From Calcarisporiella thermophila CBS 279.70 (taxonomy: Eukaryota; Fungi; Calcarisporiellomycota), in NCBI RefSeq assembly GCF_041956535.1, contig NW_027192192.1:1215111-1279110 (forward strand): DNA of 64,000 bases, given 5' to 3'. The notes under the pieces were generated by a model. It saw only the letters and a program-made list of their open reading frames with translations, was not told the DNA's origin and did no database searches. Positions within the stretch are counted from its first letter, which is position 1, and every line of letters begins with the position of its first letter. The position numbers and the translations under genes are program-made. Shown one piece after another: positions 9,976 through 12,311 of the stretch.

Positions 9976-11106
9976 ATGAGGAGGCTGAATTTTCATGTAT
10001 TGGGCTCTGGTGCCATAGGAAGCCTGCTAGCATTTCACTTAAGAAAGGCTCAACACGAAGTTACATTATTACTAAGAGATGCAAGATCGCTAGCTGCATT
10101 TCAATCCCAAGGCAGTCAGCTCATTTGTGAATCTGACGGCGTCGAGCTTAAAGCGAATGGATTCCATGCAGAAGCAATTCAATTACCAACAAGATTACCA
10201 CAAAGATACACCAAGTCGGCAATAACACAGGCTGAAGATACTGGAGGTACAATTCAACGATTGCTAGTGTGTACAAAAGCACATGATACAATTGCTGCTG
10301 TTCGTCAGTTACGAGAACGAATATCCTCAAGTGGAACTATAGTTCTTCTCCAAAATGGGATGGGTGTATGTGAAGAAGTGTGCAGTTTATTTCCTGACGA
10401 GATTACAAGGCCTAATATAGCGCTTGCAACAACAACTCACGGAAGCTTCCGCAAAAACCCGTTCCATGCTGTGCACGCGGGTAAAGGGAGTATTTGGCTT
10501 GCTGCCGTGCCAAGACCAGAACCCAATCCTTCCATTCTACAGTCAACCGACTTGAGAGAAAATATTGAGCGATTAAGAGCACTTCAATCCCAGTCTCTGG
10601 CAACCACAATAGAGGCGCTCAAAAACATCCACGAGCTGGACGTTATGGAAGAGCATTTTACTCTACTACAAGATCGACTCTTGGAGAAACTTGTAGTAAA
10701 TGCATGTATCAACCCTCTAACTGCACTGATGAATTGCCGCAATGGCGACCTACTCAATATACGATCCACTCATGAACTCACTCGTTCTATTTGCAAAGAG
10801 GCCTCTGAAGCCATTATCGCAAGTCGAATGCCGTCTGCTGATGCTCTCAATCGATTTCTACCGGATAGATTACATAAATATATAGGGGAAGTGTGTCGAT
10901 CAACCGCATCCAATTACTCCTCTATGCTGCAAGATATACGAAAGGGTAGCTACACGGAAATTGATTACATCAACGGATATTTGTATCGCCTTGCGGCACA
11001 ACATGGCGTTCAGGCACCAGTTAACTTAGCCTTATGGAGACTAGTGAAGACGAAACATAAAATCGATTGCAAACACCGTGAACGCTCTGGAGGCATCAAG
11101 CTGTAA
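9976..11106 (+). CDS. PAN5: 2-dehydropantoate 2-reductase (ketopantoate reductase), intronless
   Basis: Motifs VLGSGAIG, LLQNGMG, KLVVNACINPLTAL and NYSSMLQDI...TEIDYING. Confidence 0.92.
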   Translation: MRRLNFHVLGSGAIGSLLAFHLRKAQHEVTLLLRDARSLAAFQSQGSQLICESDGVELKANGFHAEAIQLPTRLPQRYTKSAITQAEDTGGTIQRLLVCTKAHDTIAAVRQLRERISSSGTIVLLQNGMGVCEEVCSLFPDEITRPNIALATTTHGSFRKNPFHAVHAGKGSIWLAAVPRPEPNPSILQSTDLRENIERLRALQSQSLATTIEALKNIHELDVMEEHFTLLQDRLLEKLVVNACINPLTALMNCRNGDLLNIRSTHELTRSICKEASEAIIASRMPSADALNRFLPDRLHKYIGEVCRSTASNYSSMLQDIRKGSYTEIDYINGYLYRLAAQHGVQAPVNLALWRLVKTKHKIDCKHRERSGGIKL

Positions 11107-11378: not shown

Positions 11379-12311
11379 TCACTCCTCGTGAACACTGCGT
11401 TCTAATTCCGCGCCTAATAAATACCCATAATCATGAAATAAAATCATAAAAGCGGGCAAAAGAGTATGTATTACGTTTTCGCACTTCTTCTGCATGCTTC
11501 TCATGCTGTTCAAATTTTGCGTGCTTGGCATCGTGTGCCAATTTTCGTCTCTCCTCGGCTGCAGCCAATTTCGCCTCAAGTTCCTCCAGTGTGTGAGTAC
11601 TATGAGCAAAACTGGTGAATATGTGTGCATTATTCCAAAAGCTAGTGAATATATACCTCTCCTGGTGTTTAACTTGGAGCTTACTCAACTCATCCCTTAT
11701 TTTACTAATTCTTTCTTCTTCTAGAGCCTTAACGATAAAAAAAATTTAAATAGATAACCGATATTAAAACAACTAGAGCCACGAACTTTCCGACGTTGCT
11801 CTGCAGCAGCCAGCTTTTCTTCAAGTTCTCTCTTTTCCTTATCACTTCGAAAATCAATAGCCTTGGAGATTTGATATATTTTAGAGGATAATAGCCAATT
11901 TTACCTTTCTTTTACTAATTGCTCGCGACGCATTTCGATTTCATTCCTGCGCTCTTCGAGCTTCTCCAACTTCGCTCGTTGCTATTATTGTTCGACATTA
12001 TTTTTTCCATATAAAATTATTGGGTACTCTTAGGATTATACTTGTTCATTTTTACGGTTTTCCGCATCTTCCAATTTTTTTTGAAGTTGCTCTTCTGTGA
12101 GGCTAGATATGTCCAAAATAACGATATTTTTTAATTTTACAGCATTTAAATGTCTAATAATGTTGGAGCGTAATTTCAAATACAAATAATATACACACAT
12201 TTTACGAGTCTCTCCTTGTAAACGTTTCAACAAATTTTTGGGTGGATGAATTTCATGCTTCTCAGCTTCGGGATTAGGTTCATTTGAGATAGCTTGAGAC
12301 GAATTGTCCAT
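11379..12311 (-). CDS. Stathmin-like repeat coiled-coil protein, 179 aa, 7 exons
   Basis: Exons 12311-12199, 12102-12042, 11981-11905, 11844-11787, 11727-11657, 11599-11475 and 11413-11379 join with GT-AG introns into a 540-nt ORF. It has three LxxKLxxAExRR/K repeats and a KHAEEVRK end motif. Confidence 0.7.

Follow-up and report, generated by a model that had tools for sequence, protein, structure and literature searches.

Among the textbook regulators of microtubule dynamics is stathmin, which is also the standard partner for crystallising tubulin and is usually regarded as an animal protein. A short locus in the genome of Calcarisporiella thermophila, which belongs to the phylum Calcarisporiellomycota, raises the question of whether a fungus encodes a true member of this family and, if so, what its repeats might do with the tubulin of its host. 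The locus lies in a window of 64,000 nucleotides, by which we mean the whole stretch of DNA that was analysed. A first-pass annotation made from the letters alone had proposed a fungal stathmin-like protein with three tubulin-binding-type repeats. The fungal host that it assumed is borne out by the C. thermophila genome, in which the fungus-specific domain Fungal_trans has at least 75 matches.

A seven-exon gene on the minus strand

The gene occupies positions 11379-12311 of the window on the minus strand and was rebuilt from the window with a local script. Its parts, in the order in which they are read, are as follows.

12199..12311, minus strand: exon 1, start codon, the first 37 residues and 2 bases of a split codon
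12042..12102, minus strand: exon 2, repeat 1 head containing the KL core of residue 47, with a phase-2 intron before it and a phase-0 intron after it
11905..11981, minus strand: exon 3, tail of repeat 1
11787..11844, minus strand: exon 4, repeat 2 head containing the KL core of residue 94
11657..11727, minus strand: exon 5, presumed tail of repeat 2
11600..11656, minus strand: intron 5, 57 nt, in frame and stop-free
11475..11599, minus strand: exon 6, all of repeat 3 from head to tail, containing the KL core of residue 137, 41 aa
11379..11413, minus strand: exon 7, final 10 residues and stop codon

The joined exons encode an E/K/R-rich product of 179 aa, ending at a TGA stop codon (11381-11379), which is identical to the protein proposed in the first-pass annotation and carries its three KL cores at the same residues, 47, 94 and 137. 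All six introns run GT...AG, with lengths of 96, 60, 60, 59, 57 and 61 nt in order of reading. Their phases are 2, 0, 2, 0, 2 and then 1, so the alternation 2-0-2-0-2 in register with the repeats, pointed out earlier, recurs in the rebuilt model; a two-exon unit that opens after a phase-2 intron is what duplication of an exon pair would be expected to leave. The donors (GTGTGT, GTATAA, GTAAAA, GTTCGT, GTATAT and GTAATA, in order) are degenerate, and those of two annotated beta-tubulin genes of C. thermophila are equally loose (GTTGGT and GTATCT, among others).

The six junctions rest on the sequence and on intron phase conserved in two environmental relatives, the loci L002 and L016 described below. 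Phase-2 introns precede repeat heads in L002, L016 and the window gene alike. In both relatives the first head is followed by a phase-0 intron, as is the second head in L016, matching the pattern of the window gene. Because intron 5 is in frame and lacks a stop codon, exon 5, intron 5 and exon 6 form a single open frame of 104 aa, which we used as a query in searches. All searches and models were run with single exons or stop-free open frames, and the joined 179-aa model served for local checks of frame, composition and spacing only.

No protein containing exons 5-6 was found by a word-index search or by an exhaustive phmmer search, both of which covered the public proteome of C. thermophila; hence the gene seems to be unannotated in the public protein set of the species. 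The beta-tubulin of C. thermophila, unlike the exon 5-6 protein, was found in the searched proteome. That difference, together with the weak splice donors and an intron 5 that is open and in frame, could also be taken to mean that the locus is not expressed as modelled, being a decaying relic or a gene with alternative splicing, for example with the in-frame intron 5 retained. We regard this as very improbable, given that the seven exons are open and in frame only with the six modelled junctions, that the phases match those of two distant relatives, that weak donors are normal in this genome and that exon 1 has 37 codons against 38 in L002.

Two features of the surroundings were also recorded. 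The convergent neighbour at 9976-11106 on the plus strand, an ORF of one exon and 376 aa, encodes both domains of a PanE/ApbA ketopantoate reductase (128 and 112 bits); 272 bp separate its stop codon from that of the stathmin-like gene, and exact look-up returned no public gene call for its product. Further along, between 32000 and 56000 of the window, G+C rises from about 0.38 to 0.50-0.54 across roughly 20 kb, an isochore-like block.

Stathmin homology, composition and copy number

The curated cut-off of the Pfam family Stathmin (PF00836) is 24.7 bits, and none of the single exons of the window gene reaches it on its own. Stathmin is nevertheless the best family wherever the repeats have a Pfam match: it ranks first for exon 6 by itself, at 21.4 bits (E 2.7e-4), and the best family for the open frame with exon 4, at 15.2 bits over profile positions 41-61. 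TCP11 and remorin, better matches to which had been named in advance as a finding that would speak against a stathmin, are absent among the Pfam matches of all exons and open frames at E up to 10, a range in which the HMMER filters drop most matches above about 0.1.

Matches to solved structures are more specific. Exon 6 has 20 PDB matches, every one a chain of stathmin or RB3. The best is 4f6r_C, the engineered one-tubulin design R1, with E 1.2e-4 and an ungapped alignment of 39 residues, which shows that exon 6 carries the head and the tail of a repeat unit at a fixed distance. R1 is also the best match of an early repeat profile, A2, which finds stathmins only (E 5e-7), and of profile A5, built from the repeat units of the window gene and its relatives (E 6.9e-9). 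Across a PDB set of 177,635 sequences, A5 matches 22 distinct stathmin-family sequences (E 6.9e-9 to 9e-5) before its next match, a ClpE chain at E 2.9, about five orders of magnitude away.

Relatives of the gene are few. An exhaustive phmmer search of 1.84 billion representatives returned a single one, P0001, a read-through ORF on an ENA metagenome contig (locus L002), which scores 44.2 bits against Pfam Stathmin, over the 24.7-bit cut-off. A first metagenome scan gave no relative and a second gave one further locus, L016. Word-index protein searches returned no match with the exon 5-6 open frame and only P0001 itself with P0001. Relatives thus total two across very large collections; Atlas feature searches gave scores of 0.84-0.89, leads at best. 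Both L002 and L016 have four repeats, and every single one of these has Stathmin as its best Pfam family (18.2-31.4 bits), with two above the cut-off, the last repeat of L002 at 31.4 bits and the last repeat of L016 at 26.3 bits. The stathmin-like identity put forward in the first-pass annotation is thus upheld by the top Pfam family of exons 6 and 4, by PDB matches confined to stathmin and RB3, and by relatives that exceed the cut-off.

A charged helix can resemble another by composition, and E, K and R make up 22%, 13% and 10% of the product. These figures, the single-exon Pfam scores below the cut-off and the Atlas feature scores below 0.9 would fit a generic charged single alpha-helix or coiled coil that looks like stathmin by its E/K/R/A content only. 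As a composition control, each exon of the window gene was scored, alongside 1000 composition-preserving shuffles of itself, with a profile that drew on no sequences but those of the two foreign relatives. Exons 6, 4 and 2 scored 40.7, 18.2 and 13.5 bits, respectively, and 0 of 1000 shuffles reached the score in each case; exon 3 scored 7.4 bits (reached by 6 of 1000 shuffles), exon 5 scored 1.5 bits (391 of 1000) and exon 1 scored -1.4 bits (771 of 1000). Since the real scores of exons 2, 4 and 6 lie above those of all shuffles, the match is not explained by composition alone. By the same profile, the three repeat heads, the tail of repeat 3 and, weakly, the tail of repeat 1 are recognisable; exon 5, the presumed tail of repeat 2, and the N-terminus escape recognition.

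Further points against the generic helix are that only stathmin chains match among the 177,635 PDB sequences, that the repeat-unit alignment is ungapped and that the 28-Mb genome contains no further charged helix that matches PF00836, or that matches A5 significantly. We consider that explanation largely refuted and its probability slight. Sequence comparison instead gives good support to the view that the protein is a true stathmin-family member, beyond chance composition.

Within the genome the gene stands alone. When all six frames of the 28-Mb genome are scanned with PF00836, a sole locus emerges, exon 6, at 19.6 bits, and the back-translated motif KLxAAE[EQ]RRK occurs twice, both times in the stathmin-like gene, against 0 occurrences of the reversed control. 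Profile A5 finds exon 4 with E 0.006. Taking PF00836, exon 6, P0001, the back-translated motif and A5 together, all genome-wide matches fall in the stathmin-like gene, barring one that is not significant; the gene is single-copy in C. thermophila. The exception is a weak A5 match (E 0.12, 17.6 bits) at G000:C7:804846-804914 on the plus strand (L019), inside an open frame of 1321 codons that is probably a coiled-coil protein.

Repeat spacing, the N-terminus and modelled tubulin contacts

The stathmin-family unit is of the type head E-E-[IL]-x-K-K-L-E-A-A-E-E-R-R-K and tail K-H-x-E-E-V-R-K. In the fungal protein the unit would consist of a head, [ED]-[LIV]-x-x-K-L-x-x-A-E-x-R-R-K, and a tail, H-A-x-x-V-R-K, about 20 residues on. 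The arrangement of these units in the three genes is as follows.

Window gene: 3 repeats, head-to-head spacing 47 / 43 residues
L002: 4 repeats, head-to-head spacing 51 / 48 / 44 residues
L016: 4 repeats, head-to-head spacing 51 / 48 / 46 residues

With heads at residues 47, 94 and 137, the spacing in the rebuilt model is 47 and 43, shorter than the 51 of stathmin, as had been cautioned. Animal stathmin and RB3 carry a pair of repeats on a single long helix with a period of about 51 residues, a pattern from which the window gene departs with its three heads at 47/43. At 43-47 residues, the heads lie too close for one unbroken helix to set successive units on successive 8-nm dimers; given this spacing, either the linkers unwind or some units are unused. 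Gly, Pro and Ser are abundant in the linkers that separate the repeats of L002 and L016.

The N-terminal capping hairpin was not clearly present on first inspection, and exon 1 indeed has no stathmin match in Pfam. The first exons of L002 and L016 likewise give no capping-hairpin match in Pfam or PDB, and the first exons of all three genes have in common a short P-x-x-L-x-K-[RK]-[LIV]-Q-like motif only. By eye, the first exon of L002 (L002:3107-3220, plus strand) contains VAFEVPL, which is like the AFELIL capping hairpin of animals, a resemblance that is not significant; window exon 1 has KHEIHPP at the same place.

Human stathmin is regulated through serines 16, 25, 38 and 63. Direct reading of the window protein shows N, A and L, not S, as the residue after R-[RK]-K in the three heads, and hence no equivalent of the Ser63 site after RRK; the same reading finds no S-P site in its N-terminus. 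Short linkers lead into heads 2 and 3, and these do contain Ser and Thr.

The solved structure of tubulin with RB3 shows the first alpha subunit capped by the N-terminal part, after which the helix runs along alpha-beta-alpha-beta, one repeat per dimer. Exon 6 (41 aa) was modelled together with one alpha/beta pair from C. thermophila, namely alpha-tubulin (L009:1468-2736, without about 28 N-terminal residues) and beta-tubulin P0012. This model has an ipSAE of 0.75, and the best of three controls has 0.21; in calibration of the tool, 51 of 78 solved complexes attain that mark, as do 2 of 108 mismatched pairs. Three model runs share at least 90% of contacts, and the pLDDT of the partner is at least 82. 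In the model, exon 6 residues 2-21 lie on alpha and residues 25-41 on beta. The contacted residues are 76-84, 127-131 and 382-386 of alpha (cut-chain numbering) and 104-112, 155-162 and 403-405 of beta; with an offset of 28 for alpha, these appear to be equivalent positions in both subunits. The modelled polarity, with the head on alpha and the tail on beta, is that of stathmin. The high score may reflect memory of the many solved tubulin-stathmin structures, and the model therefore shows likeness, not binding. Read in this way, it supports stathmin-style binding of repeat 3 to the organism's own tubulin.

The tubulin complement itself is large. At least nine tubulin loci (L008-L015 among them) were seen in the 28-Mb genome, many paralogues for a fungus. 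Three near-identical alpha-tubulin genes, each with one long exon of 422-425 codons, lie on contigs C16, C19 and C6. There are at least five beta-like genes with conserved introns, and the loci on contigs C2, C8 (two loci), C1 (two loci) and C5 are mostly beta-like. At the beta-tubulin locus L014, identity to the NCBI entry "beta-tubulin [Calcarisporiella thermophila]" (P0012) is 100%.

The gene structure, homology, repeat architecture and single copy number established here lead us to the reading, which we hold with a probability of about 0.7, that C. thermophila has a single-copy gene for a small helical stathmin-family protein of three tandem repeat units, likely one per tubulin dimer. Most likely, each unit would lie along one alpha/beta-tubulin heterodimer, with its head on alpha and its tail on beta. 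The protein could in this way hold up to three soluble tubulin dimers, curved and unable to polymerise, or it could report their concentration. Here we infer the stoichiometry, the sequestration or destabilisation and any effect on microtubules by analogy with known stathmins.

The protein might also be a true stathmin homologue that binds tubulin but does not sequester or destabilise it, acting as a sensor of soluble tubulin or as a scaffold that strings dimers together, with one or two of its three repeats active. Several stathmins, it has been argued, are not abundant enough for sequestration and perhaps sense tubulin instead (Deng et al. 2024, PMC11238091). That no cap is detectable, that the tail of repeat 2 is degenerate and that a spacing of 47/43 misfits the 51-residue period would all suit such a role, and the Gly/Pro-rich linkers of the relatives suggest beads on a string, not one rigid helix. 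However, the unit that binds in the model is the unit that sequesters tubulin in animals, and we regard a purely sensing or scaffolding protein as unlikely, if still deserving of some weight.

Relation to known stathmins and significance

Taking the three-unit stathmin-family protein as the preferred reading, its closest counterparts are animal stathmin/Op18 and RB3 (STMN1-4), whose complexes with tubulin are represented by PDB entries such as 1SA0 and 4I4T. The repeat unit is the same, with head and tail collinear and ungapped, and the animal proteins are likewise small and almost wholly stathmin-like domain; the head-alpha, tail-beta polarity also agrees, as far as the model goes. The differences lie in number and setting. 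Animal proteins have two repeats, whereas there are three heads in the window protein and four in the relatives. The 51-residue spacing of the animal proteins, found also as the first interval of both relatives, is replaced by 47 and 43, and the animal capping hairpin has no detected counterpart in the window protein. Finally, no repeat of the window protein has a Ser after RRK, and the fungal host is without flagellar markers.

A second comparison is with the engineered modular stathmin-like domains R1 to R4 (PDB 4F6R, 6GVM and 4F61). R1 combines the repeat 1 head with the repeat 2 tail and is the same compact unit as is repeated in the fungal gene, and in the R4 design added units add tubulins. 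The designs keep a 51-residue period, one helix and an N-terminal cap, whereas the fungal units are closer together, with Gly/Pro-rich linkers in the relatives.

The statement in the first-pass annotation that the family is generally described as metazoan is dated, because fungal stathmin-domain proteins are already listed by Deng et al. 2024 (PMC11238091). That study names choanoflagellates, ciliates and Fungi among the non-metazoan holders of stathmin-domain proteins and reports that proteins dominated by the stathmin-like domain occur in Opisthokonta including Fungi, the fungal ones being placed in a tree and not described. It also proposes cilium-related roles for the most ancient stathmins and describes STMND1, with its N-terminal MGCG lipidation motif, internal nuclear localisation signal and link to cilia. 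The trait that the window protein has in common with STMND1 and the non-metazoan members is that of a small protein, outside animals, dominated by a stathmin-like domain; unlike STMND1, it begins MDNSS, with no Gly2/Cys3, and its genome has no match to IFT57 or tektin. The missing IFT57 and tektin matches are consistent with a non-flagellated fungus. A literature search linking stathmin with zygomycete fungi returned nothing of the kind among its top results. We consider the stathmin-family gene of this early-diverging, non-flagellated fungus well supported; its multi-unit architecture is new to description, and its putative function is argued from that of known stathmins.

A microtubule regulator usually deemed animal-specific thus becomes open to study in a fungus, and a single-copy member of 179 aa and three units would be a simple system for asking about the ancestral role of stathmin. 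With a non-flagellated host, it would also test the proposal that the oldest stathmins served cilia. The thermophilic source could provide natural multi-tubulin scaffolds for structural work, and the gene's apparent absence from the public protein set is an example of how short multi-exon genes escape annotation. More tentatively, and as a conjecture that we think could well prove wrong, early-diverging non-flagellated fungi may keep a multi-module stathmin, in which three or four compact one-dimer units, capless and joined by flexible linkers, string three or four dimers as R3 and R4 do. If that multi-module reading is true, the stathmin repeat would be older than animals, its ancestral role would not be tied to cilia, and the two-repeat capped form of animals would be derived.
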